A DNA stretch of 64,000 nt, from the sequence record LR745206.1; one strand, given 5' to 3'. Of this stretch, positions 4,285-60,191 are shown piece after piece (the stretch's first letter is position 1; every line of letters begins with the position of its first letter). Position numbers and translations under genes: made by a program. The notes beneath the pieces are model-generated. The model was not told where the DNA came from. It saw only the letters and a list, made by a program, of their open reading frames with translations, and ran no database searches.

Positions 4285-5052
4285 ATGTATAATAAAATAT
4301 ATGATTTTTGTAAAGTTAGAAACATTGGTAATGTTCATAAAAATGATACAGAAATACCAACACCTAGAGTTAAATTCCTAATTGATTTATTAGAATCAGA
4401 GGGTATAGAATATGAATTAGATAAATTCCCAACAAAAGGTGGTTGGTTGTCCACCACTCCTGGTGTTGGATATAATATAATAATGAAGGGTACATCAAAT
4501 AAGATGGTAGTTGCTCATCATGATATTAATAATCCTAATATAGATAATGCAAATGATAATTCAGCTTCTGTTATAAATGCTATAATGGTTAAGAAGTTGA
4601 TGCCAAATATCAATGTTGTTCTTCTTGATGGTGAGGAATTTGGTGGTTTAGGATCACAAAGAGTTTCTGATCAAATAAATGAAGGATATTATGGTGATAT
4701 AGAATGGGTATTAAATTTAGAATTAACTGGTAAAGGTGGTAAGCATTTTTTTATTGGTAATTATCCAGGTAAATTATTTGATCATATAAAATCATTATTT
4801 GATTGTCCTGTAACACAAACACCTTATAATGATTCAGTTACCATTAGAAGAAATGGAATTGATTCTTGTGTTATTAACCCATTACCTCCACTAACTGAGG
4901 GTAAAAAATCTAGCGTTAAGTGGGGTGAAGACGTATATCTTGATTATAACATGTTATTTAATTGCCATAATGCAAAAGATAATATTGATTCTATCGATAT
5001 TAATGATATGAAAGAATTCGTAGAAGAAGTAGTTATAAAGATACTTTCCTAA
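4285..5052 (+). CDS. M28 family peptidase
   Basis: VVAHHD, NANDNSAS, DGEE, LNLE metal-ligand motifs; start placed at ATG 4285. Confidence 0.85.
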   Translation: MYNKIYDFCKVRNIGNVHKNDTEIPTPRVKFLIDLLESEGIEYELDKFPTKGGWLSTTPGVGYNIIMKGTSNKMVVAHHDINNPNIDNANDNSASVINAIMVKKLMPNINVVLLDGEEFGGLGSQRVSDQINEGYYGDIEWVLNLELTGKGGKHFFIGNYPGKLFDHIKSLFDCPVTQTPYNDSVTIRRNGIDSCVINPLPPLTEGKKSSVKWGEDVYLDYNMLFNCHNAKDNIDSIDINDMKEFVEEVVIKILS

Positions 5053-5067
5053 AAAAATATATAATGT

Positions 5068-5259
5068 GTGAAATACTTAAAACTATATGAAAATTTCGAC
5101 ATTGATGAGGTTCAAGTAGAAGAACCAATAGTCCTATCCGATAAAACAATAGATGATGTTTTGGGTGGTAATTTCTTTGATGATATTGAAGAAGATGAAG
5201 ACGAATCTTATCTAGATTCAAAGGGTATTGCTCATATAAAAAATTGGACTATCTATTAA
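5068..5259 (+). CDS. Small acidic protein with MKYLKLYE N-terminal motif
   Basis: 63 aa ORF, shared N-terminal motif. Confidence 0.65.
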   Translation: MKYLKLYENFDIDEVQVEEPIVLSDKTIDDVLGGNFFDDIEEDEDESYLDSKGIAHIKNWTIY

Positions 5260-5663
5260 TGAATTTTCAAGAGTTTTTAATATTAGAAAAAAGAATCTCA
5301 CAGATTGTTTCAAAAATCGAAATCACATTTTCACTAGATGTTATAAAGACATCACATGCCGAAGATAGATCTAACTTTGATAAAAGGGGATTACCCGGAT
5401 TTAATCAAAGACACATATCAAATGCTGAAATGTCAGAATTTGTTAATTTCTTTAAGCGTGAAATATCGGAAGGTATTGCTATTGGTGATATAGTAGATAA
5501 AACAGAATTTGTTATAAGAAGTGTTGATAGAGAACTATCTATGGCTATTATAGCGGATGAAGTATCTAATACCTATTGGAAGTTAATAATTAAAACTGTT
5601 TTTAGGGAATCTCATGAGAATAGTCTGAAAACAGGAATTGACCAATTAGTATATGATAAATAA
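5259..5663 (+). CDS. Hypothetical protein
   Basis: ORF 5244..5663; coupled ATG at 5259 preferred. Confidence 0.7.
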   Translation: MNFQEFLILEKRISQIVSKIEITFSLDVIKTSHAEDRSNFDKRGLPGFNQRHISNAEMSEFVNFFKREISEGIAIGDIVDKTEFVIRSVDRELSMAIIADEVSNTYWKLIIKTVFRESHENSLKTGIDQLVYDK

Positions 5664-11980: not shown

Positions 11981-14900
11981 TTATCTAACTGCTGTATTTA
12001 TAGCCGGTGCTGTTTTCTTAACAATGACTTTGTTTCTATTTAAATTAAATTTAATAGTAAATATAAATGGTCTATTTTCTGCTTCATTTTCTAAGAAAAA
12101 TCTAACCTTTTTGATATGTTTAACAGTTTGATTTTGTCTGTTTAGATTTATATATTGATAATTTAAACCATCTTGATTATTATCCAATGCGTTCATTTTA
12201 AAGTAAATACTAAGTGGTATAATAGTTGAATTTCTATCACCAGCGCTTATAACCTTAACCTTGTCGCTATTTGTTTCTACAACAGATTCTAAATCTTTTA
12301 CAACTGGATGAATACTTGATAATAATTTTGTTGTTGATGCTACTGAAACAGTTGAATCAACCCATTTTGATGGATCCAATAAAGATTTATTGTTACCAAC
12401 AAATGATAGTATTGTAGTTTCATTATATCCAATATTATATTCTGTTGAGCTCAATATAGATGTAATTGAGTTGTTTGAATTTGGACCAAATGAATTTCCT
12501 ATGTTTTCAGAAACTTTAGCAACTGATGTATCATTTATGGAATCATAATTAACCATCCAAACAAATTGATTGTTTAATTGTGTTCTTGTTAATCCTGATA
12601 TATCTGATGTTAATAACTCATCTTGATCATTAACCCAGAATGTTTGAGGAGCTCCTGTATTATAAACATCATTATTTTGTAAATATGTTCTATTTGATAA
12701 AAGTCCAAGTGGTGATTCAGATGCTTTGTTCTTAATTTTTATAACAAAATCTTTAATAACATATATATCATTAGCATAAACTCTACCAGTTGGTATACCT
12801 TGACCACTAAATGAATTTAAATAATCTTCACACTCAACATTAAATACAGTCTCAGCTCCATTATTTATAACAAATTCTTGATTATTTCTAAGTATAATAA
12901 CTTCAAGTTCACCTTTAGCTCTTTTGATTTTTTCTTCAAGACCTCTTATTCTGTCTTCAAGACCTCTCATATATTCAAATAAATCAAGTGATACACCATT
13001 CTCATCTTTGAATCCAGATAATATCTTCGTTGAATCATGGTGATATGTTTTAGCATTAACAGTTACCGTATCTGATAAATGCTCATCCAAACCTTTAGCT
13101 GATAACTCATTATCCATACTCACCTTTAAATCTTCCTTAGTAGCTTCTTGTAGAATGAAATCATTTTCATTCAATACATTATTCAAATCATCAGGAAACT
13201 CAACAGTCATTATTTCAGACCAATCAGATTCAACTGGTGATTCTGGCCAACCAACTTCTGAGATTGATTTTATTCTCATCTCAACTCTTTCACCAGTTTG
13301 TATTGAAATATCAATTTGATTGATATTTGGTGTGTCAGCACTCTCTAAATCCTCTATTTGCCAATAGTATTCACCTGTTTGTGGATCAAATATTCTTTTT
13401 CTAGCATCTGTTTTGAATTCATTCCAATTTGAAAAACTAGCTTCTTTTTTAACACTTGTATTTAGAGCATCAAGTTTGAATGTCTCAATTGGGGTTTCTT
13501 TACCATCCTTACTCACATATCTATATTGGATACGGAATTGCACAATCTCTTGTGGTTTTGTACCTCTTGTAACAACAGCTTCTGGCATATCCCAAAATCC
13601 TCTTACTCTAAATTTAGGATCAACTTTTGTCTTTGGACTTCTTGATAAATCAATAATCTCTTTTGTGACAGAAGCTAATAATTTAGACTTACTAGTTTTC
13701 TTCTTTGTTAAATCATCAACTTCTAATTGTGATTGCTTCTTAGAAGATTCTGATTTAAATTTAGTAACCTTTAATTTCTTATTTCTATCTAAGATAGCAT
13801 CTTGTATTTGTTGAACTTCCGACTTTAAAGAAACTTGATAGTTATGCTTTTGTTTTATTAAATTGGAATCTGGTGTATCAGTTAAATGTTTATTAACTTG
13901 TACAACTTTGAAATTATCTAATATAAGTGTAGGTGATATCGGTGTACCAGCTAGTTTATTTGGTGTTTTTTTAGCAACTAAATCTTGTAAAACTTCACCA
14001 TAATCATAAACATAATCAATATAGAATTGTTCCATCGATAAACCATTAGATGGTGAATCAGAATCAAGTCTTAAATCATTTGTGTAAAATCCAGTACCTA
14101 AACTCCACTTTTTAGCAACCAAGTGATTTTCTGTATTTATTGGTTTTAAGAATATAATGTTTCTCTCATTATAACCAATACTAACTCTTACTTTTTTAGT
14201 GTATATAACTGGTGAGTATATTTTTAATGCACCAATAGCCACAGGTATTGGTTCTAGTCCTTCAATTCTTTCGAATCTAACTCTTGGATTTGATTCAACT
14301 GTTGAAACTTCTATAACTTTATATCTAGTTGATGTTTTATCACTATTTATGATAACCTCATCACCTATTGTTAGTGTTTTTACTTCTGTTGTTTCAACCA
14401 CAATATATTCTAATGTATCTAGTACATACCATAATTTTCTATTCAATCTATCCTCTTGTATTCTTAATACTGAGAATTGACCATCATATAATAAATTATT
14501 TGGTTCTAAATCAAATAATTGTTCGTCATATCTTGGATTTAATGGTTCAACTAATCCAGATGTTGTTTGGTGCCAATTTTCAAATTCAGAAAATACAATA
14601 TTAGAGTTACCTCTAAATAATGAATTAAAACTATTAAGAGCTGATTGACCTAGATTTGTTAGATTACCATCCACATCCTTTGCAAAATCAACAATATATC
14701 TTCTAGATAAACATTTCCTAACATCATTTTCTATCTTACCTGATAAATCAAGTTCGATTGATAATAATGGATCAAGTAAACTATCAAAAAACCAATTTGT
14801 GTTAGATTTAAAATTAGATATACTACCTAAACTATTAATAGCAACCGGTTCCCTATTTAAATCAACAGTTATTATTTTCTTAAATTTGTTTTGACTACTT

Positions 14901-31483: not shown

Positions 31484-31696
31484 ATGAGTAAACTTAGAAA
31501 TGGTGGTATGATAACCGAAAGAGATTATACTAATAAAACTTTAGAAGAAGCAGTAGAATATGCTGAGGCTGGTGGATTCGTAACAAGAATTGTTGAAAAA
31601 GACGGTAAACCAATTAGTTTAGATATGTCTGTTAGAGCAGATAGAATAAATTTTAGAGTCGTTAATGATAGAGTAACTGCCGCTTTTGGAGGCTAA
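31484..31696 (+). CDS. Small protein resembling I78/I13 protease-inhibitor fold
   Basis: LDMSVRADRINFRVVNDRVTAAFGG resembles the T-M-D-x-x-x-D-R-x-N loop. Confidence 0.45.
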   Translation: MSKLRNGGMITERDYTNKTLEEAVEYAEAGGFVTRIVEKDGKPISLDMSVRADRINFRVVNDRVTAAFGG

Positions 31697-31698
31697 TT

Positions 31699-32133
31699 AT
31701 GGATAAGATAAACAAAATACAAGCATATCATTCCTTTACAGTTATGCCAAAAGATTGTAATTTCAATAAACGAAAGAACAGTGATCTTAATGATACATTA
31801 TTTGGTGGTAAGTTAATGTATGAGATGGACTATGCCGGTGCTAAAATAGCAAGAAGAGCTACTTATGGTATAGATATCGATATGATAGTTACCGCATCAA
31901 CTGATAGAATTAATTTTGAAAAACCAGCTTTTATTGGTGATTTAATAACTATGGAAGCTACTATAAAAGCTTTTGGTAGATCATCTATACAAATAAGGAT
32001 AAAGGTTAGACGAGAGGATTTAAAGGGTGATGTAGAACAAATTTGCTCAGCTAATATGACATTTGTTACTATAAAGGATGGTAAACCGATACAACATGGA
32101 TTATCTTTTGATAAATTAAATTTGGAGAATTAA
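31699..32133 (+). CDS. Acyl-CoA thioesterase (hotdog fold)
   Basis: VMPKDCN..TLFGGKLM, VTASTDRINFEKPAFIGD, GRSS, MTFVTI. Confidence 0.88.
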   Translation: MDKINKIQAYHSFTVMPKDCNFNKRKNSDLNDTLFGGKLMYEMDYAGAKIARRATYGIDIDMIVTASTDRINFEKPAFIGDLITMEATIKAFGRSSIQIRIKVRREDLKGDVEQICSANMTFVTIKDGKPIQHGLSFDKLNLEN

Positions 32134-32154
32134 ATATATATAACTATATTTGTA

Positions 32155-32265
32155 TCATATTGATGGTTGTGTGAGTTGCGTAGTGACAAGAACACAGGCT
32201 ATACAACATAGGTTCACAGTTCAAAGATTCAATAATCTACTTCTTAGAGCGACCTTTCCCACAAT
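32155..32265 (+). ncRNA. Possible small structured RNA
   Basis: Own TAnnTTTG box at 32145, no ORF, end-to-end pairing TTGTG/CACAA and GTTGC/GCGAC. Confidence 0.3.
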
Positions 32266-32379
32266 ATTTTATAAATAAATTAAAATAAATTAGGTAGATA
32301 TAAAACTTTTATCTATATTTGTATAAAATAATAACAAAAACGAAAAAAGGGACAATTCCTTTTTAATATATAAGAAATA

Positions 32380-32475
32380 ATGACAACAAATAGTACACAT
32401 AAGAATTTTAGTAAATCGCATAAATGGTTTAGCAACCAATCGTTCGGTACTGAAAGTGTATTGTCATTAAATTAA
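32380..32475 (+). CDS. Putative attenuator leader peptide (His/Phe/Trp) MTTNSTHKNFSKSHKWFSNQSFGTESVLSLN
   Basis: 2 His, 3 Phe, 1 Trp; followed by a terminator and His/Phe/Trp tRNAs. Confidence 0.75.
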   Translation: MTTNSTHKNFSKSHKWFSNQSFGTESVLSLN

Positions 32476-32508
32476 TGTAGAAGTTAAATTAATAAACAAC
32501 AATATTTC

Positions 32509-32538
32509 AATCCGAACTCAAAAGTTCGGATTTTTTTT
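32509..32538 (+). terminator. Attenuator terminator, His/Phe/Trp tRNA block
   Basis: AATCCGAAC-TCAAAA-GTTCGGATT plus T-tract. Confidence 0.85.
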
Positions 32539-32552
32539 GTTTAAAAATATAT

Positions 32553-32627
32553 GGTGTGTGAAGGGAAAATGGTTGACCCGTCACTCTGTGAAAGTGAAGA
32601 TAGCGGGATCGTTACCCGTCATACACC
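32553..32627 (+). tRNA. tRNA-His (GTG)
   Basis: TCACT-CT-GTG-AA-AGTGA; encoded G-1 and C73; T-loop ATCGTTA. Confidence 0.85.
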
Positions 32628-32634
32628 CAAATAA

Positions 32635-32707
32635 GGAACCTAAGCTAATCAGGTGAAAGCACTGGACTGAAAATCCAGGGAGCCCGGATCGTTACCGGGA
32701 GGTTCCA
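32635..32707 (+). tRNA. tRNA-Phe (GAA)
   Basis: CTGGA-CT-GAA-AA-TCCAG; acceptor GGAACCT/AGGTTCC. Confidence 0.88.
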
Positions 32708-32714
32708 CAAACAT

Positions 32715-32788
32715 GGTGAATGTAGCTCAATTGGGAGAGCGTCTGGTTGTGAACCAGAAGGTAGTCGGATCAAAACCGACCTTTCACA
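32715..32788 (+). tRNA. tRNA-His (GTG), atypical
   Basis: TCTGG-TT-GTG-AA-CCAGA; T-loop ATCAAAA, A at position 73. Confidence 0.75.
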
Positions 32789-32794
32789 CAAAAT

Positions 32795-32866
32795 GGAGGC
32801 TTAGCTGAGACGGTTTAGCGTTGGTGTGAAGTACCAAAGAGGTCGGTTCGATTCCGGCAGTCTCCA
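32795..32866 (+). tRNA. tRNA-Phe (GAA)
   Basis: TTGGT-GT-GAA-GT-ACCAA; canonical T arm. Confidence 0.8.
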
Positions 32867-32881
32867 CAAAATAACTAACAC

Positions 32882-32953
32882 GCGGATGAGCGTAGGTTTA
32901 GTCGGCAGGATTCCAACCCCTCGCCCGTTAGAGTTCGAATCTCTACATCCGCG
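32882..32953 (+). tRNA. Degenerate tRNA-like gene (CCA/Trp or TCC/Gly register)
   Basis: Perfect acceptor GCGGATG/CATCCGC and T arm TAGAG-TTCGAAT-CTCTA; D and anticodon stems poorly paired. Confidence 0.45.
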
Positions 32954-32959
32954 CAAATA

Positions 32960-33027
32960 ACAAGTAGTGACTAAGAGGGTTACTTCGATTTTAACGACAA
33001 ACAATACTCTCTTTATTTTTCTCTTGT
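32960..33027 (+). other. Hairpin element homologous to the flanks of the permuted tRNA-Cys
   Basis: Shares CAAG-TAGT...GAG...GTTACTTCGA.T...CGAC...AATAC..CTC with 59031-59158; ACAAG/CTTGT closing pair. Confidence 0.5.
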
Positions 33028-33032
33028 TAAAC

Positions 33033-33103
33033 ACGGGTATGGTGAAATGGTATCATTACGGTCTCCAAAACCGCAGTTCTGAGTTCGAATCTTGGTACCC
33101 GTG
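33033..33103 (+). tRNA. tRNA-Trp (CCA)
   Basis: ACGGT-CT-CCA-AA-ACCGC; G73. Confidence 0.88.
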
Positions 33104-33135
33104 CAAATTATTAAAAATTGAAAAAGGAAGAAATT

Positions 33136-33165
33136 ATGAAAACTAAATTAAAATATAAACGATAG
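33136..33165 (+). CDS. Putative leader peptide (Lys) MKTKLKYKR
   Basis: 4 AAA Lys codons in 9; same GAAGAAATTATGAAAACTA 5' context as the leader at 33630; followed by four tRNA-Lys. Confidence 0.7.
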   Translation: MKTKLKYKR

Positions 33166-33195
33166 GGTTAGTAACCAATTGAAAGTTACTAACCC
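33165..33195 (+). promoter_or_regulatory. 11-bp hairpin starting at the Lys leader stop codon
   Basis: GGGTTAGTAAC-CAATTGAAA-GTTACTAACCC; no long T-tract. Confidence 0.7.
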
Positions 33196-33208
33196 ATTTA
33201 GAAAAAAT

Positions 33209-33281
33209 GCGTTCGTAGCTCAATTGGTAGAGCTTCCGGCTTTTAACCGGAAGGTTGTGGGTTCGATTCCCTCCGGGCGTA
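33209..33281 (+). tRNA. tRNA-Lys (TTT)
   Basis: TCCGG-CT-TTT-AA-CCGGA. Confidence 0.88.
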
Positions 33282-33292
33282 CTAGTAAATAT

Positions 33293-33378
33293 CCGTCCGT
33301 GGGTGAATGGCTGAAACCACCAGACTTTTAATCTGACGAGAGAGATCTCCATTGTAGGTTCGAATCCTACCGGGCGGA
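33293..33378 (+). tRNA. tRNA-Lys (TTT), long variable arm
   Basis: CCAGA-CT-TTT-AA-TCTGA; extended variable region. Confidence 0.75.
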
Positions 33379-33382
33379 CAAG

Positions 33383-33465
33383 GCACCTGTCGCTTAGCGG
33401 CTATAGCAACTGGCTTTTAACCAGTCGAGTTTTCTCAATCGTGGGTTCGAGTCCCACCAGGTGCA
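33383..33465 (+). tRNA. tRNA-Lys (TTT), long variable arm
   Basis: ACTGG-CT-TTT-AA-CCAGT; variable CGAGTTTTCTCAATC. Confidence 0.8.
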
Positions 33466-33471
33466 CAAAAT

Positions 33472-33557
33472 GACTCCGTTCCCGTAGTTGGCCGAACGGT
33501 CCAGACTCTTAATCTGGCGACGAAAGTCCACCGTGGGTTCGAATCCCACCGGGGTCA
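33472..33557 (+). tRNA. tRNA-Lys (CTT), long variable arm
   Basis: CCAGA-CT-CTT-AA-TCTGG; variable GAC-GAAA-GTC hairpin. Confidence 0.8.
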
Positions 33558-33629
33558 CAAGAATAAAAGTTAAAAAATTAGGAATTGACAAAAACAAACA
33601 TTACATTTGTAATATATAAAGAAGAAATT

Positions 33630-33704
33630 ATGAAAACTATTAACAACACATCGAAAAGTTCTAGTCGCTCATCAAGTATGAGTGAGATTCGATTGTATTC
33701 GTAA
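33630..33704 (+). CDS. Putative attenuator leader peptide (Ser/Arg) MKTINNTSKSSSRSSSMSEIRLYS
   Basis: 9 Ser + 2 Arg in 24 aa; own TACATTTG promoter; terminator then Arg/Ser tRNAs. Confidence 0.82.
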   Translation: MKTINNTSKSSSRSSSMSEIRLYS

Positions 33705-33726
33705 TAGTCAAGTATAGATATTTATG

Positions 33727-33757
33727 AAACCTCGAATCTAACGATTTGAGGTTTTTT
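33727..33757 (+). terminator. Attenuator terminator, Ser/Arg tRNA block
   Basis: AAACCTCGAATC-TAAC-GATTTGAGGTTT plus T-tract. Confidence 0.85.
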
Positions 33758-33767
33758 GTTTTAAAAT

Positions 33768-33839
33768 GGTTCCATCGTTCAACGGATAGGACACTCGGCT
33801 ACGAACCGAGAAATTGGGGTTCGAATCCCTATGGAATCA
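33768..33839 (+). tRNA. tRNA-Arg (ACG)
   Basis: CTCGG-CT-ACG-AA-CCGAG. Confidence 0.9.
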
Positions 33840-33844
33840 CAAAT

Positions 33845-33931
33845 GGAAGAGTAATTAAGCTGGCGCTTGACCTAGTCTTGAAAACTAGTGGTACTGAAAG
33901 GTATGGGGATCGATACCTCACTCTTCCGCCA
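33845..33931 (+). tRNA. tRNA-Ser (TGA)
   Basis: CTAGT-CT-TGA-AA-ACTAG; long variable arm, G73, encoded CCA. Confidence 0.85.
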
Positions 33932-33935
33932 AATT

Positions 33936-34022
33936 GGAAAAATAAGAGCAGTTGGTCTAAGCTCGGCGGTTTTGAAAACCGTAGGCCCTAGTGGTGTGTG
34001 AGTTCGAGTCTCACTTTTTCCG
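33936..34022 (+). tRNA. tRNA-Ser (TGA)
   Basis: GCGGT-TT-TGA-AA-ACCGT; long variable arm, G73. Confidence 0.85.
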
Positions 34023-34031
34023 CAAAAATTT

Positions 34032-34118
34032 GGAGAGCAATCTAATCTGGTGATTAGGGCCGCCTGCTAAGCGTGTCGCACCTTCGGGTGTGGGGTTCAA
34101 TTCCTCTGTTCTCCGCCA
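34032..34118 (+). tRNA. tRNA-Ser (GCT)
   Basis: CGC-CT-GCT-AA-GCG; variable GCACC-TTCG-GGTGT; encoded CCA. Confidence 0.8.
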
Positions 34119-34121
34119 AAT

Positions 34122-34205
34122 GGAAGGCAATCTAACTTGGTAGTTAGCCACGCTTGGAAAGCGTCGGGCACCTTCGGGTGTGGGTTTCGATTACTCTGTC
34201 TTCCG
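34122..34205 (+). tRNA. tRNA-Ser (GGA)
   Basis: ACGC-TT-GGA-AA-GCGT; same variable arm as the preceding gene. Confidence 0.8.
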
Positions 34206-34210
34206 CAAAT

Positions 34211-34291
34211 GCCTCTGTATCGTCCTCGTCTTCGAAACGAGAGTAGCGTAACGGATAATGAAAAATGTAGGTTCGAATCCTACCAGGGGTA
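34211..34291 (+). tRNA. Rearranged tRNA-Arg (TCG)-like gene: no D arm before the anticodon, D-arm-like hairpin after it
   Basis: GCCTCTG/CAGGGGT acceptor, CTCGT-CT-TCG-AA-ACGAG, CGT-AACGGATA-ATG, GTAGG-TTCGAAT-CCTAC. Confidence 0.6.
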
Positions 34292-34295
34292 CAAA

Positions 34296-34598
34296 ATGAA
34301 TGAAATAATTATAGGAGATTGTCCGATTTGTGATCGTGAAATGTGGAGAGGTAGCTTTGTCGATAGGCATCACTTTTACCCTAAGTGTAAAGGTGGTAAA
34401 GAAACAGAGTATCTACATAAAGTGTGTCACCGAAAGATACATTCTGTTTTTACAGAAAATGAATTGGCAAAAGAATATAATAATGCTGAGATTGTTAAAT
34501 CTCATCCAGAAATAATTAAATTCATAAAATGGGTATCTAAGAAAGATCCTGATTTTTATGATAGTACAGTAACACATAATAGGAAAAGGAGAAGGTAA
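34296..34598 (+). CDS. HNH-family nuclease-like protein
   Basis: CPIC...DRHHFYPKCKGG...LHKVCHRKIH; start ATG 34296 (the track extension overlaps tRNAs). Confidence 0.8.
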   Translation: MNEIIIGDCPICDREMWRGSFVDRHHFYPKCKGGKETEYLHKVCHRKIHSVFTENELAKEYNNAEIVKSHPEIIKFIKWVSKKDPDFYDSTVTHNRKRRR

Positions 34599-34906
34599 TG
34601 GAAAGAGAAGAAATTTACAGAAGACATATAAGGTATGGTACATCGTCTGAGGGTACACTTATGTTGATGCAAAGTTTATTAACTGAAATATTGAGACCGG
34701 AGTATAGAAAAATTTGGGTTCAAGGTTCCTCAAGAGGTAGTCTATGTTTTACTATATTTGATAGAAACTCATATACAATGAGATTTTTCAACACTGGTGG
34801 ACTAAGACAATTCAGGGTGGATGCTCCATTGGAAGAAGAGATAGTTGCTATGGAAAGATTAATAGAGATATTCCGACAAGGTGTTCTATCTGAATTTATA
34901 GATTAG
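34598..34906 (+). CDS. Hypothetical protein
   Basis: 102 aa, coupled to the previous stop. Confidence 0.6.
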   Translation: MEREEIYRRHIRYGTSSEGTLMLMQSLLTEILRPEYRKIWVQGSSRGSLCFTIFDRNSYTMRFFNTGGLRQFRVDAPLEEEIVAMERLIEIFRQGVLSEFID

Positions 34907-35084
34907 GAGAGAGGATATGTGATATATAAGATATGAAGAAAGTATTTAAATTTATCACATATCCTTTAAGTAGATATATAAAAAATAGAATTAAATCTAG
35001 ATTAAATTGGTAATAATGAAAATTATTCCTATATTTGTAATTAATAATTAAAACATAAACGAAAAATATAATATATAAATAATA

Positions 35085-35424: not shown

Positions 35425-36060
35425 ATGGAAATTAAAATTGATAGTACTTATAAAGGAACAAGAATCCTTTTTGCGGAAACAGCTAAGAGTAAACGTGTTT
35501 TACTAAATGATATGATTGAAATACTTGAATCTTATGGATATCAAGAAATAATGATACCAATCATACAAAAACAAGAAACTTTCGCTTCAAAGGTGGGTGA
35601 TGAAAATCAAAACATGATGTATAACTTTAAAGATAGAGGTAATCGTGATTTATGTTTATCACCAGAGTACACAGCAATTGTTCAACAATTAGCCTCTGAT
35701 AGAATGAAGTTTGATAAAGATGTTAAAATGTTCTACATAGGAGAATGTTTTAGAGGAGAAAATACACAAGCTGGAAGATGGAGACAATTCACACAATTTG
35801 GTGTTGAAGTCTTAAATCCATCTAAAGACTACTCTGATGAAATGATAGAAATTGCTACTAAACTAATTGAATTAGTTACAAAAAATTATGAATTAAACAC
35901 AGACGCAACAAGAGGTCTTGACTACTACAATGGTGGAAAGGGATTTGAAATTGCTTGTCCTGAGTTGGGAGCTGCTAAACAAATTTGTGGGGGAGGTTCT
36001 TATGAAGGAGGTATTGGTTTTGCCGTTGGTGTGGACAGATTACTATTATGCAACAGATAA
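35425..36060 (+). CDS. hisS: Miniature histidyl-tRNA synthetase (catalytic core only)
   Basis: YKGTR, LCLSPEYTA, FRGENTQAGRWRQFTQFGVE, RGLDYY, GGGSY, GFAVGVDR; ends with no anticodon-binding domain. Confidence 0.85.
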   Translation: MEIKIDSTYKGTRILFAETAKSKRVLLNDMIEILESYGYQEIMIPIIQKQETFASKVGDENQNMMYNFKDRGNRDLCLSPEYTAIVQQLASDRMKFDKDVKMFYIGECFRGENTQAGRWRQFTQFGVEVLNPSKDYSDEMIEIATKLIELVTKNYELNTDATRGLDYYNGGKGFEIACPELGAAKQICGGGSYEGGIGFAVGVDRLLLCNR

Positions 36061-53947: not shown

Positions 53948-54366
53948 AGTATTTGAAAAGATTTAATGAATCATTGGATGAAACAGTAATTATAGATTTT
54001 ATCAGTGATATATTTTTGGAATTAAAAGATAATAACAATAACATTGATATTGAGATAATCCCAAGATATAAATATAGTTCGTCTAATATGTACACAATAC
54101 CGGATAAAACAAAGATAGTTGGATTTGATATCAGAATATCATCACAAAAATATCCTTTTAAGTTAAGTGATATTTATGATAATGTTTTAGTATGTATGGA
54201 TTATATGAGAAGTAATAATATGTTTTTAAAATCATTTGATTCACTAGATATATCAAATAATAATAGTGTAGTAGATATTAATTATTTTTATGACTATATG
54301 ATGGGTGTTGAGAAAGATGTATCAAGTAAATACTTTTCTATTAGATTTAACTTGAAAGTTATATGA
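53944..54366 (+). CDS. Hypothetical protein (MKYLKRFNES motif)
   Basis: 140 aa ORF. Confidence 0.7.
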   Translation: MKYLKRFNESLDETVIIDFISDIFLELKDNNNNIDIEIIPRYKYSSSNMYTIPDKTKIVGFDIRISSQKYPFKLSDIYDNVLVCMDYMRSNNMFLKSFDSLDISNNNSVVDINYFYDYMMGVEKDVSSKYFSIRFNLKVI

Positions 54367-54824
54367 AACATTTAAAAACATATAAAATATTTGAATCTAA
54401 TTTAGATGATACGTATTATGATGTAGAATCTATCTTTTACTCTTTGAGAGATTATGGATATGATATTTATGTTGATAAGGAAGAAATACAATTGGATAAT
54501 TATGTTGAAGAAACAATTGCTTTTCATATAGGTAAGAATAATGATAATTCATCATTAGCTTCTACATCTGGTGATCCTTTTGTGATAGAAGGTGAATCCG
54601 AGGATATTAATGAATTAAAAGATTGTATATTAAGAGTTAAAGATTTTTTAAGTGATTGGGTTTGTTATATGGAGATAAGATATAATAAAGAAAGGTTTAT
54701 ATCTATTAATAAAGATGTGAAAATAGAAAATGATTCTTTTTTTGAAATTAGAGATAATAAACTAGTTGATTTCCCTATTATAAGATTAAAAGTATTTTTT
54801 ATAAGAAAAATTAAAAATATTTAA
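54363..54824 (+). CDS. Hypothetical protein (MKHLKTYKIFES motif)
   Basis: 153 aa; first 12 aa identical to ORF 60202..60651. Confidence 0.7.
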   Translation: MKHLKTYKIFESNLDDTYYDVESIFYSLRDYGYDIYVDKEEIQLDNYVEETIAFHIGKNNDNSSLASTSGDPFVIEGESEDINELKDCILRVKDFLSDWVCYMEIRYNKERFISINKDVKIENDSFFEIRDNKLVDFPIIRLKVFFIRKIKNI

Positions 54825-54869
54825 AAAGGGAGACAACCTTTTTAATATATACACGTATAATAAAGACAT

Positions 54870-54941
54870 CGCGGGGTAGAGCAGTGGCAGCTCGCAAGGC
54901 TCATAACCTTGAGGTCGTTGGTTCGAATCCAGCCCCCGCTA
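54870..54941 (+). tRNA. tRNA-fMet (CAT), initiator type
   Basis: CGCGGGG 5' end with unpaired C1, CAAGG-CT-CAT-AA-CCTTG; no leader or terminator upstream. Confidence 0.85.
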
Positions 54942-55028
54942 CTAAAAAATATTAAAATAAATTAGGTAGATTAGAAAAAACTACTTATATTTGTAAAAGA
55001 ATTAATAAACAAGATAATAAATAAACAA

Positions 55029-55115
55029 ATGAACACAATTACTAACATAGCGTCTTACGAATCTTATTATGAAGAGGGTAACCTAGTCAGACGAAATAAC
55101 TATGTCGTAATGTAA
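55029..55115 (+). CDS. Putative attenuator leader peptide (Tyr/Glu) MNTITNIASYESYYEEGNLVRRNNYVVM
   Basis: YESYYEE core (4 Tyr, 3 Glu in total); terminator then Tyr/Glu tRNAs. Confidence 0.82.
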   Translation: MNTITNIASYESYYEEGNLVRRNNYVVM

Positions 55116-55139
55116 GTAATTATATAAACGAATATTTAT

Positions 55140-55173
55140 ACCCAGTCTGACAAATGTTAGACTGGGTTTTTTT
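55140..55173 (+). terminator. Attenuator terminator, Tyr/Glu tRNA block
   Basis: ACCCAGTCTGAC-AAAT-GTTAGACTGGGT plus T-tract. Confidence 0.85.
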
Positions 55174-55187
55174 ATGTCAAAAAATTC

Positions 55188-55255
55188 GGGATGAATTATG
55201 GTGATAGCCGGGTCTGTAAAACCCTAGCAGGTGAGTTCGAGTCTCACACATCCCA
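55188..55255 (+). tRNA. tRNA-Tyr (GTA), atypical short form
   Basis: GGGT-CT-GTA-AA-ACCC; truncated D arm, short variable loop. Confidence 0.65.
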
Positions 55256-55266
55256 CTAAAACAAAT

Positions 55267-55338
55267 GGTCCTATCGTCTAAAGGTTAGGATAACAGACTT
55301 TCAATCTGTTGATACGGGTTCGAGCCCCGTTAGGACTA
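55267..55338 (+). tRNA. tRNA-Glu (TTC)
   Basis: ACAGA-CT-TTC-AA-TCTGT. Confidence 0.88.
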
Positions 55339-55343
55339 CAAAT

Positions 55344-55415
55344 GCTCTATTCGTCTAGTGGCAAGGACATCACCCTCTCAAGGTGAAGACGCGGGTTCGA
55401 CTCCCGTATAGAGTA
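55344..55415 (+). tRNA. tRNA-Glu (CTC)
   Basis: TCACC-CT-CTC-AA-GGTGA. Confidence 0.88.
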
Positions 55416-55426
55416 CAAAATTAAAT

Positions 55427-55498
55427 GCTCCGTTCGACAAGCGGTTAAGTCGTTGCCCTTTCAAGGCAAAGTCACGGGTTCGAATCCCGTACGGAGTA
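55427..55498 (+). tRNA. tRNA-Glu (TTC)
   Basis: TTGCC-CT-TTC-AA-GGCAA. Confidence 0.88.
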
Positions 55499-55523
55499 CA
55501 AACAGACATCAACGTAATGTCTG

Positions 55524-55647
55524 GGTGATGTAGAGCAATTGGTAGCTCATCTGCTAGTTAAATGATGGAATAATCATAATCCTGAAGCTATTATAAAATA
55601 GGCGACACGGTTGGTTCTTGGTGTAGGTTCGAGTCCTATCATCACTA
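55524..55647 (+). ncRNA. tRNA-like RNA with a large insertion replacing the anticodon arm
   Basis: Acceptor GGTGATG/CATCACT, D arm GAGC-AATTGGTA-GCTC, T arm GTAGG-TTCGAGT-CCTAT; about 70 nt insert with small hairpins. Confidence 0.6.
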
Positions 55648-55653
55648 ATACCT

Positions 55654-55736
55654 GGGATGTTATACCGTAGGGGTAGCGGGACAGACTGTAAATCTGTTAT
55701 CTTCGGATTCGGGTGGTTCGACTCCATCACGTCCCA
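55654..55736 (+). tRNA. tRNA-Tyr (GTA)
   Basis: ACAGA-CT-GTA-AA-TCTGT; long variable arm. Confidence 0.85.
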
Positions 55737-55745
55737 CAAAAATAT

Positions 55746-55817
55746 GGTCCATTCGTCTAATGGTTAGGACGCTAGGTTTTCAACCTAGAAATACGGGTTC
55801 GATCCCCGTATGGACTA
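55746..55817 (+). tRNA. tRNA-Glu (TTC)
   Basis: CTAGG-TT-TTC-AA-CCTAG. Confidence 0.88.
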
Positions 55818-55822
55818 CAAAT

Positions 55823-55906
55823 GGGGATATAGAGCGTAATTGGTAGCGTCCCGGGCTGTAAACTCGGTGTCTTTTGATCTTGTAGGTTCGAGTCCTGCTA
55901 GCCCCA
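55823..55906 (+). tRNA. tRNA-Tyr (GTA)
   Basis: CCGGG-CT-GTA-AA-CTCGG; long variable region. Confidence 0.82.
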
Positions 55907-56080
55907 CAAAAAGAAATAATATAATATATTTGGTTTATTTGGTTTATTGAAATATTATATTTATATTTGTAAAAGAATCGTAATCCCAAGTAACCCCTTG
56001 GTCGATTTTTTAACAAATTAAAAAAGATTAAAAGGGAAGGTAAAACTTTTTATATATACATACATATAATAGGAACGAAA

Positions 56081-56164
56081 ATGAAAAATTTAAATAACAT
56101 ATCAATAGCAGTAATCGGGAACGGCGCGGGAGCGATACGTGAGTGGCTGAGTTATGGTATTTAA
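56081..56164 (+). CDS. Putative attenuator leader peptide (Ile/Gly/Ala) MKNLNNISIAVIGNGAGAIREWLSYGI
   Basis: 5 Ile (3 ATA), 4 Gly, 3 Ala; terminator then Ile/Gly/Ala tRNAs, GlyRS and AlaRS. Confidence 0.82.
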   Translation: MKNLNNISIAVIGNGAGAIREWLSYGI

Positions 56165-56183
56165 TTAAATTAAAATATTTCAA

Positions 56184-56215
56184 AAACCCAGTCACGAAAA
56201 TGACTGGGTTTTTTT
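56184..56215 (+). terminator. Attenuator terminator, Ile/Gly/Ala block
   Basis: AAACCCAGTCA-CGAAAA-TGACTGGGTTT plus T-tract. Confidence 0.85.
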
Positions 56216-56227
56216 GTTTTTAAAAAC

Positions 56228-56301
56228 TGGTGAGTAGCTTAGATGGTAAAAGCATCTGTCTTATATACAGAAGATAATGGGATCGTTACCCATCTCACCA
56301 A
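56228..56301 (+). tRNA. tRNA-Ile (TAT)
   Basis: TCTGT-CT-TAT-AT-ACAGA; T-loop ATCGTTA. Confidence 0.8.
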
Positions 56302-56305
56302 CAAC

Positions 56306-56376
56306 GCGAGATGTAGCTTAATGATAAAGCGTCTGCCTTCCAAGCAGAAGACGGAGTTTGATTCTCACATTTCGCT
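56306..56376 (+). tRNA. tRNA-Gly (TCC), atypical T arm
   Basis: TCTGC-CT-TCC-AA-GCAGA; U73. Confidence 0.72.
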
Positions 56377-56381
56377 CAAAT

Positions 56382-56455
56382 AGTCCCTTAGCACAATTGG
56401 TTAGTGCACCTCGCTCATAACGAGAAGGTTATCGGTTCGAATCCGGTAGGGACTA
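56382..56455 (+). tRNA. tRNA (CAT), probably Ile2 (lysidine type)
   Basis: CTCG-CT-CAT-AA-CGAG; C4-G69 and C5-G68 pairs as in TilS substrates; elongator Met not excluded. Confidence 0.7.
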
Positions 56456-56501
56456 CAAAATGAGAAAACATTAAAACCATCTCACCAGGATGTAAAATAC
56501 C

Positions 56502-56573
56502 GCAGTAATGGTGTTAATGATAGCACATGAGACTTCCAATCTCAAGGTGTCGGTTCGAGTCCGATTTACTGCT
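56502..56573 (+). tRNA. tRNA-Gly (TCC)
   Basis: TGAGA-CT-TCC-AA-TCTCA; U73. Confidence 0.85.
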
Positions 56574-56634
56574 CAAGTATTTTAATATATATTCCAATCC
56601 AATTTATGGTTGGAAGATAAAATTAGAATTTATT

Positions 56635-57072
56635 ATGATTTGTAGAATTTGTGAAATTGATAAAGTAGAAGAAGATTTTCATTATCAAACAAAAAAGAAA
56701 GATAAGAGGAAAAAGTATTGTAAAGAATGTGCTAAGGGATATAGGAAGAAGTATTATGAAGCGAATAGAGAAAAATCTATCGAGTATTCCAAAAATACCA
56801 ATAAAAGTTTTAAGATAAAACTACAACAGTATATATGGGATTATCTAACAATTAATAATTGTATAATATGTGGTGAAAATGATCCAATTGTATTAGAATT
56901 TGACCATAGAGATTCGAGTGAGAAGTATATGGGTGTTTGTAATATGGTTAATACTAGACATTCGTTGAAAAAAATAATGAAAGAAATTGAAAAGTGTGAT
57001 GTTTTGTGTAGTAATTGTCATAAAAGAAAAACGGCTATTCAGTTTGATTGGTATAGTAAAATTATAAAATAA
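56635..57072 (+). CDS. HNH endonuclease with N-terminal Zn-ribbon
   Basis: CRIC..CKEC, CIIC..LEFDH..LCSNCH; start ATG 56635. Confidence 0.85.
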   Translation: MICRICEIDKVEEDFHYQTKKKDKRKKYCKECAKGYRKKYYEANREKSIEYSKNTNKSFKIKLQQYIWDYLTINNCIICGENDPIVLEFDHRDSSEKYMGVCNMVNTRHSLKKIMKEIEKCDVLCSNCHKRKTAIQFDWYSKIIK

Positions 57073-57079
57073 AAAATAT

Positions 57080-57155
57080 GGGGGCACATGTTCCAAGGCT
57101 TTGGCGAGTTTGACTTGCAATCAGACTGAGGTGGATTCGATTTCCACTGTCTCCA
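57080..57155 (+). tRNA. tRNA-Ala (TGC)
   Basis: TTTGA-CT-TGC-AA-TCAGA; G3.U70 pair. Confidence 0.8.
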
Positions 57156-57171
57156 CAAAAATTAAAAAGAA

Positions 57172-57912
57172 ATGGAAACATTATATAACATAAATAGTTT
57201 AGTAATCTGGGAAGAAAAGGATCTTAGGATTAGAAAGTTCATAGAGGATACTATGAAAGAGGAAATTAAAACAATATTACTCTCTCAGAATCCAGCTTGG
57301 AAATTCTATCAGATTGAAGCTCCTTGTCTTATACCAAGAGATTTGGTTAATGAGAATTATACCAATGAAGATATTTGGGTACAAGAAACAAAAGATGATG
57401 AAGTTGAATTGGTATTAAAACCTGAAACAACACCAAGTTCTTATGTATATGCTCAACACTTGTTAAATACAAATAGATGTCTACCACCACTTGTTGTTTG
57501 GCAAACATCTAAATCTTTTAGAAGAGAACAAGACCAAGTGATGAAGAATATGAGATTGAAAGAGTTTTATCAACAAGAGTTTCAATGTGTTTATTCAGCA
57601 AGTACACTGAATGATTATCAAGAAAATGTTCTTGAACCAATCAGAAAAATGTTGGAAGATATAATCGCTCTACCAACAAGGATAGTTGAGAGTGATAGAT
57701 TACCTTCTTATAGCCTAAGAACAATGGATATAGAAGTTTATAATGATGATAAATGGATGGAGATTTGTTCAATATCAAAAAGAACCGATTTTCCACAAAA
57801 AGCAGTATTTACTGTTAAGAACAAAGTTATCGAGACTGATTTATTGGTACTTGAAATAGCATTGGGTGTTGATAGAGTATTGTATAATTATATGAAACGA
57901 ATAAATAAATAA
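57172..57912 (+). CDS. Miniature glycyl-tRNA synthetase-like class II catalytic core
   Basis: LKPETT, motif 2 KSFRRE..MRLKEFYQQEFQ, WMEICS, motif 3 LGVDR; ends with no anticodon-binding domain. Confidence 0.75.
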   Translation: METLYNINSLVIWEEKDLRIRKFIEDTMKEEIKTILLSQNPAWKFYQIEAPCLIPRDLVNENYTNEDIWVQETKDDEVELVLKPETTPSSYVYAQHLLNTNRCLPPLVVWQTSKSFRREQDQVMKNMRLKEFYQQEFQCVYSASTLNDYQENVLEPIRKMLEDIIALPTRIVESDRLPSYSLRTMDIEVYNDDKWMEICSISKRTDFPQKAVFTVKNKVIETDLLVLEIALGVDRVLYNYMKRINK

Positions 57913-57929
57913 AAATAAAAAATAAAGAT

Positions 57930-58804
57930 ATGAAAAGGCTGGACGCATTTTAGTCACAGAAGAATATAAATCTTACTGTGACGTTAATAAAATTAAATTT
58001 AAAGTAGAAGAAAGTGTTAAATCTTATGATGATACGACATTATTTTGTCCATCAGGGATGCAACAATTCAAATCTAATTTCAAGGACGAGAATTATAAAG
58101 GAACAATATCCAATATTCAATCTTGTTTGAGATTGAATGATATAGATGAAATAGGTGATGGAACACACCTACTATATTTTAATATGATTGGATTCTTCTC
58201 ATTTAGAGAGTGGACTGTTCCACAAACAATTGATTATTGGATGGAATTCCTTAACTTAATAGGAATTAAACCTGATTATGTTACAATACACCCAACTAAA
58301 CCAGAATGGAGTGAGTGGTATAAAAAATATGAAGTTGAAGTAAGGTTTGATGAAGAGTGTAAATGGACAGATGGTGATATTGGTGGATATTGTACCGAAT
58401 TTTATAAAGATGATATAGAAATAGGTAATATTGTTAATCCACTTGGTACCTGTATAGATGTCGGATTCGGCTTAGAAAGATTGAAAATGGTTTTAGACAA
58501 CCAAATAGTTAGTAAAGAAGATACTCTAAAAGAAAGTATTATGAAAATAATAGAGAGTGGATTCAGACCAGGAAATAATAAACAAGGATATATTTTAAGA
58601 AAACTTCTTAGATTATGTCACCAAAATAAAATAGAAATAGAACATCCGTTTTATATGGATGAAGTAAAAAGACAGGAGAAGATATTAGAGAAGTGGGGTA
58701 AGTTAAAAAATAAACACAATGATAAATCAAAGGAATGGTGGTGGGACACACATGGTATTGATTTAGATTTTATAAAAGAAATTGAAAAAAATGAAAATAT
58801 TTAA
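57930..58804 (+). CDS. alaS: Miniature alanyl-tRNA synthetase (N-terminal catalytic domain), start uncertain
   Basis: YDDTTLFCPSGMQQFK, QSCLR..D, H..YFNMIG, EIGNIV, IDVGFGLERL, GYILRKLLR; the conserved motif lies upstream of the track start 58058. Confidence 0.8.
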
Positions 58805-58946
58805 AAATATAAAAGATGGTGAATTATATATCTTGGTTGAATTAAAACCAGGGATATACACAGCTATCCCAATAAATAGCGGTGATAAACCGATTAGTAA
58901 TTGTAATATGATTGATTTCGTACCAACAATTATAAACCGAAATTAA
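58791..58946 (+). CDS. Small hypothetical protein (51 aa)
   Basis: MKIFKNIKDGELYILVE...NRN, translated by hand. Confidence 0.45.
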   Translation: MKIFKNIKDGELYILVELKPGIYTAIPINSGDKPISNCNMIDFVPTIINRN

Positions 58947-58957
58947 TTTCGGTTAAT

Positions 58958-59030
58958 GCGAGAATAGCTCAGTTGGTAGAGCGCCACCTTGCCAAGGTGG
59001 AGGTCGCGGGTTCGAGCCCCGTTTCTCGCT
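58958..59030 (+). tRNA. tRNA-Gly (GCC)
   Basis: CCACC-TT-GCC-AA-GGTGG; canonical cloverleaf. Confidence 0.92.
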
Positions 59031-59045
59031 CAAGATAGTAGTAAT

Positions 59046-59157
59046 GAGAAGTGTTACTTCGACTGCAATTCGACTAGTCCAGGTTCGAATCCTGGCACCG
59101 GCTCAAATAAATAATGTCGGTGTGGTGTAATGGTAGCACAGTAATAACACACTTCTC
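59046..59157 (+). tRNA. Circularly permuted tRNA-Cys (GCA) gene candidate
   Basis: 3' half (59059-59103) precedes 5' half (59116-59141); acceptor GTCGGTG/CACCGGC, U73, flanks GAGAAGTGT/ACACTTCTC. Confidence 0.7.
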
Positions 59158-59175
59158 AAATTTTCTCTATCTAAT

Positions 59176-59249
59176 GGGGGATTAGCTCAGTTGGCTAGAG
59201 CGCCTGCCTTGCACGCAGGAGGCCATCGGTTCGAATCCGATATCCTCCA
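59176..59249 (+). tRNA. tRNA-Ala (TGC)
   Basis: CCTGC-CT-TGC-AC-GCAGG; G3.U70. Confidence 0.92.
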
Positions 59250-59375
59250 CAAAATATTAGGATATGTGGAAAATATTCTTATATTTGTATAAATAATTTA
59301 TAAACTATCATTTTTCTTTGTCAAAAGGAGAATAAAAAATTTCAAAGAGATTTGAAAAAAAAGAAAAATGTAGTT

Positions 59376-60191
59376 ATGAAAAAAGACAACTTCGGAGACC
59401 GTATGAAAATGTACGAATCTCAAACCTGTGGAATTAAACTTATTCCCAGAATTCCTGTAATCGCTCGTTTAGATGGAAAAGGATTTTCCAAATTTACAAA
59501 AGGACTAAAAAGACCTTATGACGAGAGACTATCCAATCTTATGATTGAAACTGTTAAGTATCTTGTAAAAGAGACTAATGCTAATTGTGGTTATACTCAA
59601 TCTGATGAGATCACTCTGGTTTGGTATACTGATAAGATAGATGCTTCAATTTATTTTGATGGTAGACTTTTCAAGATGTTAAGTGATTTATCTGCTATGG
59701 CTTCTGTTTATTTCAATAGAAGACTTGGTGAATTTCTTCCAGAAAAAATTGATAAGATGCCTAGATTTGATGCTCGTGTTTATAATGTTCCTACTTTAGA
59801 TGAGGCAGTTAACTCTTTCCTTTGGAGAGAACAAGATGCTACTAAAAACTCTATTAGTATGGCGGCACAAGCTTTCTATTCTCACAAGCAACTAATGGGT
59901 AAGAACGGAAGTGATAAACAAGAGATGCTTTTTGAAAAAGGTGTTAATTGGAATGATTACCCATCATTCTTCAAAAGAGGAACTTATATTCAAAGAAAAA
60001 GAATTGTAACTCCTTTCAGTATTGAGGAAATTGAGAAACTTCCACCTAAACACAATGCTAGAAAGGATCCAAATTATTGTGTTGAAAGATGGGTTATTGA
60101 TAAAATCAATCTACCACCACTTTCTAAAATTGATAATAAAATTGGTGTTATTGTTTTTGGTGAAGATGTAAAATTAAAAAGTCCAGTTTAA
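59376..60191 (+). CDS. Thg1-like tRNA(His) guanylyltransferase / 3'-5' polymerase
   Basis: ARLDGKGFSKF, KRPYD, YTQSDEI, FDARV, WREQDA.KNSI; start ATG 59376. Confidence 0.92.
   Translation: MKKDNFGDRMKMYESQTCGIKLIPRIPVIARLDGKGFSKFTKGLKRPYDERLSNLMIETVKYLVKETNANCGYTQSDEITLVWYTDKIDASIYFDGRLFKMLSDLSAMASVYFNRRLGEFLPEKIDKMPRFDARVYNVPTLDEAVNSFLWREQDATKNSISMAAQAFYSHKQLMGKNGSDKQEMLFEKGVNWNDYPSFFKRGTYIQRKRIVTPFSIEEIEKLPPKHNARKDPNYCVERWVIDKINLPPLSKIDNKIGVIVFGEDVKLKSPV

Follow-up and report, generated by a model that had tools for sequence, protein, structure and literature searches.

In a 634,780-bp phage genome (LR745206.1) predicted to come from a phage of Bacteroidota, a tiny serine/arginine-rich reading frame and a terminator/antiterminator RNA switch lie directly in front of serine and arginine tRNA genes, apparently so that these tRNAs are made when the corresponding codons are read slowly. 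The best explanation on sequence evidence alone, without expression data, is a classic ribosome-mediated (leader-peptide) transcription attenuator that serves as codon-specific feedback on the supply of phage tRNAs. We analysed a window of 64,000 nucleotides corresponding to bases 310001-374000 of this unannotated record. Genomes of this size in the study that published them belong to the Mahaphage clade and are predicted to infect Bacteroidetes (PMC7162821). The window has 29.7% G+C, and its tRNA genes lie in two zones, all on the + strand; the coordinates below are those of the window, and all of the features described are on the + strand.

We first examined the leader ORF and the genes downstream. 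The ORF at 33630-33704 encodes MKTINNTSKSSSRSSSMSEIRLYS, followed by a stop codon and directly afterwards by a second stop (TAG) at 33705-33707, and no long ORF competes for the region. It has nine Ser codons (TCG twice, TCT once, TCA twice and AGT four times) and the Arg codons CGC and CGA, most of them in a run of regulatory codons at 33651-33683. Among the 369 ATG-initiated ORFs of 15-40 codons in the six frames of the window, this is the most Ser/Arg-rich, with nine Ser/Arg residues in its densest 11-residue stretch compared with seven for the next best, and the binomial probability of at least 9 Ser in 23 residues is 6e-5. Thus a chance ORF was rejected. The preliminary description, which had reported this leader with its nine Ser codons, the complementary octamers and the Arg, Ser ×4 and Arg-like tRNAs as the clearest of several examples, was confirmed in every detail, and its interpretation as an attenuator matched to the downstream tRNAs at codon-box level is supported.

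ARAGORN at default settings detected only two of the downstream tRNA genes, a canonical tRNA-Arg(ACG) (33768-33839 or 33768-33840, depending on the delimitation; Rfam tRNA model, 56.7 bits) and a canonical class II tRNA-Ser(UGA) (33936-34022 or 33936-34023; 50.5 bits). The others were recovered using Rfam models and relaxed ARAGORN settings. Three of these fit the tRNA-Sec model best: a tRNA-Ser(UGA) with a tRNA-Sec-like or allo-tRNA-like fold and the anticodon loop CUUGAAA (33845-33927 or 33845-33931; 45.5 bits), a tRNA-Ser(GCU) with a 6-bp D stem and a 4-bp T stem (34031-34115 or 34031-34118; 47.4 bits), and a tRNA-Ser(GGA) (34122-34204 or 34122-34206; 41.3 bits). The last gene, at 34211-34291, is an aberrant tRNA-Arg(UCG)-like gene (35.6 bits) in which the D arm is replaced by 4 nt and the variable region carries a 22-nt insert; the homologous position in the related genome LR756502.1 (L001) holds a canonical tRNA-Arg(TCG).

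Upstream of the ORF, a Bacteroidota sigma-A-type −7 box, TACATTTG (33602-33609, or 33602-33611 with the adjoining TA), agrees with the consensus TAnnTTTG (PMC9723704, PMC7366714), and a TTG lies at 33585-33587. The predicted transcription start is near 33614, 16 nt before the ATG, and the region upstream of the ATG is A-rich, as Bacteroidota initiation prefers. The motif TANNTTTGTA occurs 19 times in the window against 9.9 expected, 16 of them on the + strand, and the same box sits 18-28 nt before the ATG in homologues.

Next, we examined the predicted RNA structures. The leader region folds with a z-score of −3.3. In both the minimum free energy and the centroid structure, the regulatory codons are covered by a leader hairpin (33648-33696; a 1:2 anti-antiterminator or pause hairpin), in which AUCGAA at 33649-33654 pairs with UUCGAU at 33688-33693. 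A hairpin over the codon run is predicted in all 14 homologues, although with varying partners. An intrinsic terminator occupies 33726-33762, with a 13-bp stem (33726-33755), the loop UAAC and a U-rich tail (TTTTTTGTTTT, running from the last stem bases at 33752 to 33762), and it ends 6-12 nt before tRNA-Arg(ACG), its tail stopping about 6 nt short of the gene. The octamer AGATTCGA at 33685-33692 (region 2), inside the ORF at codons 19-21, is the exact complement of TCGAATCT at 33732-33739 (region 3). A duplex with the 5′ arm of the terminator at least as stable occurs in 1.3-1.7% of dinucleotide shuffles. The 8-bp helix is, however, only the core of a larger antiterminator (33685-33739): when only 33684-33742 is available, as with a ribosome stalled upstream and the 3′ arm of the terminator not yet made, the RNA folds into a structure of −16.3 kcal/mol that takes up the entire 5′ arm of the terminator. 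The terminator hairpin alone is −15.5 to −16.0 kcal/mol. The two structures are thus about equally stable, so the outcome would depend on kinetics.

To test whether these elements are conserved, we collected relatives through the small gene next to the cluster (34296-34598), namely L001, four IMG/VR contigs and 45 metagenome contigs, and found 14 distinct homologues of the leader. All keep the ATG, the frame, a stop and a Ser/Arg-rich core within 21-25 codons, and all length differences are in whole codons. Interestingly, the order of the residues drifts while the composition is kept, as in TSKSSSRSSSMS, TSSRSRSSKSG, TSSSRSSNSSK and VSSSRSSSGH. An initial MAFFT alignment put region 2 of three homologues (L006, L014 and L018) out of register and was replaced by one starting at region 2. 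On the latter, the 8-bp antiterminator core was paired in 97.1% of cells and four of its eight pairs showed double changes; none of 500 shuffles reached this, and slid registers gave at most 54% paired. The terminator was paired in 97.0% of cells, with double changes in five of 12 pairs. As half of the antiterminator core is the palindrome TCGA, we asked whether the complementarity is trivial. This is partly true for 4 of the 8 bp, but the flanks covary, and in two homologues (L013 and L015) the in-ORF TTCGA became TCCGA while the terminator arm TCGAA became TCGGA, which breaks the palindrome yet keeps the pairing. An exact-pattern scan of IMG/VR for the terminator/tRNA junction and a local pattern search over the collected loci found nothing, and loci fetched through the protein at 54363-54821 hold no tRNA genes and gave nothing.

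At the codon level, all 11 Ser/Arg codons of the leader can be decoded by the anticodons that follow, UGA, GGA and GCU for Ser and ACG (as ICG) and UCG for Arg. The long ORFs of the phage use AGA/AGG for 88% of Arg codons and CGN for only 12%, yet every regulatory Arg codon in all 14 leaders is CGN, and AGA appears only at the conserved second position (MRT) of two leaders. It should be noted that the phage hardly uses the CGN codons that its leader would test.

We then asked whether the design is restricted to this unit (hereafter unit c). In the window, four further short ORFs precede tRNA groups. Unit a (32380-32532) consists of the ORF MTTNSTHKNFSKSHKWFSNQSFGTESVLSLN (32380-32475) and a terminator (32509-32532), followed by His, Phe, His, Phe, Trp and Trp tRNAs. 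Unit b (33136-33195) has the mini-ORF MKTKLKYKR and an 11-bp hairpin, followed by four tRNA-Lys genes; none of its seven distinct versions has a U tract, so it cannot be read as a canonical attenuator and not every unit fits the scheme. Unit d (55029-55167) has the ORF MNTITNIASYESYYEEGNLVRRNNYVVM, containing SYESYYEEG, and a terminator (55140-55167), followed by a Tyr-like gene, three Glu, an unassigned tRNA-like gene, Tyr, Glu and Tyr. Unit e (56081-56214) has the ORF MKNLNNISIAVIGNGAGAIREWLSYGI, with the stretch ISIAVIGNGAGAI, and a terminator (56184-56214), followed by Ile(UAU), Gly(UCC), CAU and Gly(UCC). After the hypothesis had been formed, we read the next 50 kb of the same genome and found three more units that fit it: MTTTQQIQQQQINQTD before three tRNA-Gln genes, a leader containing PVNPQPQDQDP before Pro and Asp tRNAs, and an N/L/T/V/I-rich leader before those tRNAs. 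Related phages add leaders containing FDFAFEFAAEAD before Phe, Glu, Asp and Ala, VLVLQVLFVLF before Phe, Leu and Val, and QDKQYQPQYD before Asp, Tyr and Gln. Units were also found in cultured phages of Flavobacteriia, namely Cellulophaga phi4:1 (three units), Cellulophaga phi10:1 (one unit before its only two tRNAs, Tyr and Phe) and Tenacibaculum phage Gundel_1 (two units).

For 16 non-redundant units from this genome, related phages and cultured phages, curated by hand from the pipeline output, the summed excess of cognate residues was 4.01, compared with a maximum of 2.32 in 300,000 permutations of leaders against tRNA sets; 13 leaders ranked their own set first and three ranked it second. 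In all 16 units tested, the best upstream partner of the 5′ arm of the terminator, searched over the leader from codon 7 up to the terminator, lies within the leader ORF before its stop codon. The per-unit p values were 0.001-0.18 and Fisher's combined p was 5e-12, although some units are homologous pairs and this overstates independence. No clear leader/terminator units were found among the scattered tRNAs of Prevotella phage Lak-B4, so the design is not universal in Bacteroidota megaphages.

We propose that RNA polymerase of the host type starts near 33614 and that a ribosome begins translating the 24-codon leader. If the Ser (UCN and AGY) and Arg (CGN) codons are read quickly, the ribosome would run on to the stop codon at 33702, which lies 10 nt after region 2, and would mask region 2, so that the terminator forms and transcription ends before tRNA-Arg(ACG). 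The stop codon lies 22 nt before the terminator stem, which a terminating ribosome cannot reach, and direct melting of the terminator by this ribosome was therefore rejected for unit c. If decoding of any of these codon boxes is slow, the ribosome would stall on the 5′ strand of the leader hairpin, leaving region 2 free to pair with region 3 as soon as it emerges, and the polymerase would read through into the six tRNA genes. Ribosomes stalled at the last Ser codons (33675-33683) or at CGA (33690-33692) would cover region 2, so only stalls at about codons 8-15 could antiterminate. Because the products are the molecules that relieve the stall, the circuit would be a codon-specific negative feedback on tRNA supply. 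We consider this reading likely, with translation of the ORF, coupling of ribosome and polymerase, the direction of the response and the physiological trigger being inferred.

An alternative that retains the same switch is that the signal is amino-acid starvation or general translation stress, which would tie phage tRNA output to the nutritional state of the host. A stalled ribosome reports a lack of charged tRNA whatever the cause, a leader peptide cannot tell tRNA shortage from amino-acid shortage, and the architecture appears identical with that of amino-acid operon attenuators. However, extra tRNA does not relieve amino-acid shortage, and the match of the leaders to the exact isoacceptor boxes of the downstream genes, including the rare CGN codons, makes sense for tRNA sensing; we thus regard this alternative as unlikely. 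It is less likely still that the hairpin is a constitutive leaky terminator, or a processing or stability element, behind an untranslated ORF whose composition is an accident or a relic of tRNA-derived sequence. There is no direct evidence of translation, and TTCGA resembles the T-loop consensus, which makes such an origin conceivable, but against this reading are the permutation result, the conserved start, frame and stop with indels in whole codons, the covariation of region 2 with region 3 inside the coding sequence and the extreme composition of the ORF. The N-terminal motif M-[KRNT]-[TN]-[IFVL]-x-N-[IT] is conserved across units and phages, which might suggest functional micropeptides placed before tRNAs by operon layout only. 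Downstream of this motif, though, the peptides share nothing except a composition that follows the neighbouring tRNAs, and we consider this very improbable.

Why phages carry tRNA genes, and when they use them, is an old question, for which codon-usage matching, compensation for host tRNA decay and evasion of tRNA-cleaving defences are candidate answers. A switch whose sensor is written in the codons that its products decode suggests that these phages make tRNAs on demand. A more speculative possibility, which we consider less likely than not, is that the leaders sense host tRNA loss during infection, for example through cleavage by anticodon nucleases of defence systems or host shut-off, and that the phage answers with replacement tRNAs. 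Many of these are structurally unorthodox (tRNA-Sec-like Ser tRNAs, Lys tRNAs with long variable arms and multiple isodecoders) and could therefore escape the nucleases, which would make this an inducible, codon-specific counter-defence widespread in phages of Bacteroidota. The composition of the leader also offers an annotation rule, as it predicts which tRNAs follow, including the oddly shaped ones missed by ARAGORN at default settings.

We found no published description of leader peptides or attenuators in front of tRNA genes, in phages or in cells, although the literature searched was incomplete and earlier work cannot be excluded; the paper that published these genomes does not mention them (PMC7162821). 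The finding would extend leader-peptide attenuation to RNA genes and to viruses. Large phages such as T4, T5, the mycobacteriophage Myrna group, XacN1 and vibriophages also carry clusters of tRNA genes, often with homing-endonuclease genes between them, but in the arrays of the three tRNA-rich phages of other phyla examined using the same pipeline (Xanthomonas phage XacN1, Mycobacterium phage ScoobyDoobyDoo and Vibrio phage D482) there was no terminator within 40 nt before any of 32 tRNA-preceding gaps and no matched leader. A T-box riboswitch likewise senses the state of a specific tRNA through codon–anticodon recognition and chooses between terminator and antiterminator, but it binds uncharged tRNA directly, without translation, through a specifier loop and a T-box sequence. 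No T-box match was found in 31500-35000 at E≤1, and the leader is only about 150 nt and contains a conserved ORF as the proposed sensor. There was also no hit to the Rfam His, Thr, Leu, Trp or Leu/Phe leader families at E≤1 in 31500-35000 or 54700-59400. Leader-peptide attenuation before amino-acid operons has been noted in Flavobacterium psychrophilum (PMC9723704), in the predicted host phylum. In mechanism, unit c appears to match the trp, his, leu, thr (Thr and Ile) and ilvGMEDA (Ile, Val and Leu) leaders, with the 2:3/3:4 architecture, a 1:2 hairpin that is predicted only and, for the mixed leaders, multivalent sensing; those regulate enzymes that make the amino acids, whereas here the leader composition is re-tuned unit by unit to whichever tRNAs follow. 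It is probably closest in spirit to the Escherichia coli pheST attenuator with its pheM leader peptide, which also controls a component of the translation apparatus for the amino acid encoded by its regulatory codons; there, however, the product is an aminoacyl-tRNA synthetase, one amino acid is sensed and the element is chromosomal, whereas here the products are tRNAs, two amino acids and five codon boxes would be sensed, and the element is in a phage.

Three further leader/terminator units were found in the same genome, just outside the window, in the stretch LR745206.1 374001-424000 (positions 13700, 32703 and 33638 of that stretch): an N/L/T/V/I/R unit, a P/D(/Q) unit and a pure Gln unit, whose leader reads MTTTQQIQQQQINQTD followed by a stop codon. 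Cultured phages of Flavobacteriia, namely Cellulophaga phage phi4:1, phi10:1 and Tenacibaculum phage Gundel_1, carry the same codon-matched leader/terminator units. Interestingly, one leader of phi4:1 is hidden inside the annotated 'hypothetical protein' gp075, and in Gundel_1 an HNH endonuclease gene sits between one terminator and its tRNAs.

However, tRNA(CAU) (54870-54942), tRNA-Gly(GCC) (58958-59031) and tRNA-Ala(UGC) (59176-59250) have no leader ORF in front of them, and thus not all tRNA genes of the phage are under this control. A second conserved upstream motif, AAAAGGGA-N8-10-TTTTTAATATATA, was observed directly before leader a (32345-32372), which precedes the His, Phe and Trp tRNA genes, before the leaderless tRNA(CAU) at 54870 (54825-54855) and before leader e (56030-56062), which precedes the Ile and Gly tRNA genes, and also at about 3195-3215 of L001 (the related phage LR756502.1). 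This motif may be a second promoter type, for example one for a phage-specific factor.

The Lys mini-ORF of the unit at 33136-33195, MKTK[LR]KYK[RPQ] followed by a stop codon, is conserved, being found also in L001 (3885) and in the related loci L004, L007, L012, L020 and L022. It is followed within 0-3 nt by a 10-12 bp hairpin whose sequence differs in every lineage, and there is never a U tract; it is not a canonical terminator. The mini-ORF sits inside the operon, with no promoter of its own, just before the tRNA-Lys genes.

A small conserved gene (34296-34598; CPICDREMW...RHHFYPK...HKxCHRKIH) always lies next to the Ser/Arg tRNA cluster in relatives; it looks like an HNH-type nuclease, although no Pfam hit was obtained at E<=0.01. 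A 211-aa fragment similar to histidyl-tRNA synthetase (Pfam PF13393, 4e-23) lies downstream of the cluster at 35425-36057; in L001 an ORF (4552-5270) that by eye resembles a class I (Trp/Tyr-type) synthetase lies between the Lys tRNAs and the Ser/Arg leader. The 78-nt spacer between the two tRNA-Trp genes (32955-33032) has no tRNA or Rfam match and no obvious ORF.

Several of the tRNA genes have an unusual structure. The tRNA-Arg(UCG)-like gene at 34211-34291 has lost its D arm and has a 22-nt insert (GUAGCGUAACGGAUAAUGAAAA) in the variable region that itself looks like a displaced D arm, although relatives have a normal tRNA-Arg(UCG) at this position. A tRNA-like gene of 124 nt at 55524-55647 (Rfam tRNA 40.9 bits) contains an insert of about 30-50 nt, and its anticodon could not be assigned with confidence. 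Three of the four tRNA-Lys genes (UUU, UUU and CUU; 33293-33379, 33383-33466 and 33472-33558) carry a long variable arm with a 4-5 bp stem (84-87 nt), as is also seen in L001, L002 (another related locus) and L004; in bacteria this feature is normally limited to Leu, Ser and Tyr tRNAs. Furthermore, three tRNA-Ser genes (UGA, GCU and GGA; 33845-33927, 34031-34115 and 34122-34204) are conserved in L001 and L004, and so are probably functional. They fit the Rfam tRNA-Sec model better than the general tRNA model, with a long acceptor stem, a 6-bp D stem with a 4-nt loop and a 4-bp T stem, which recalls allo-tRNAs.
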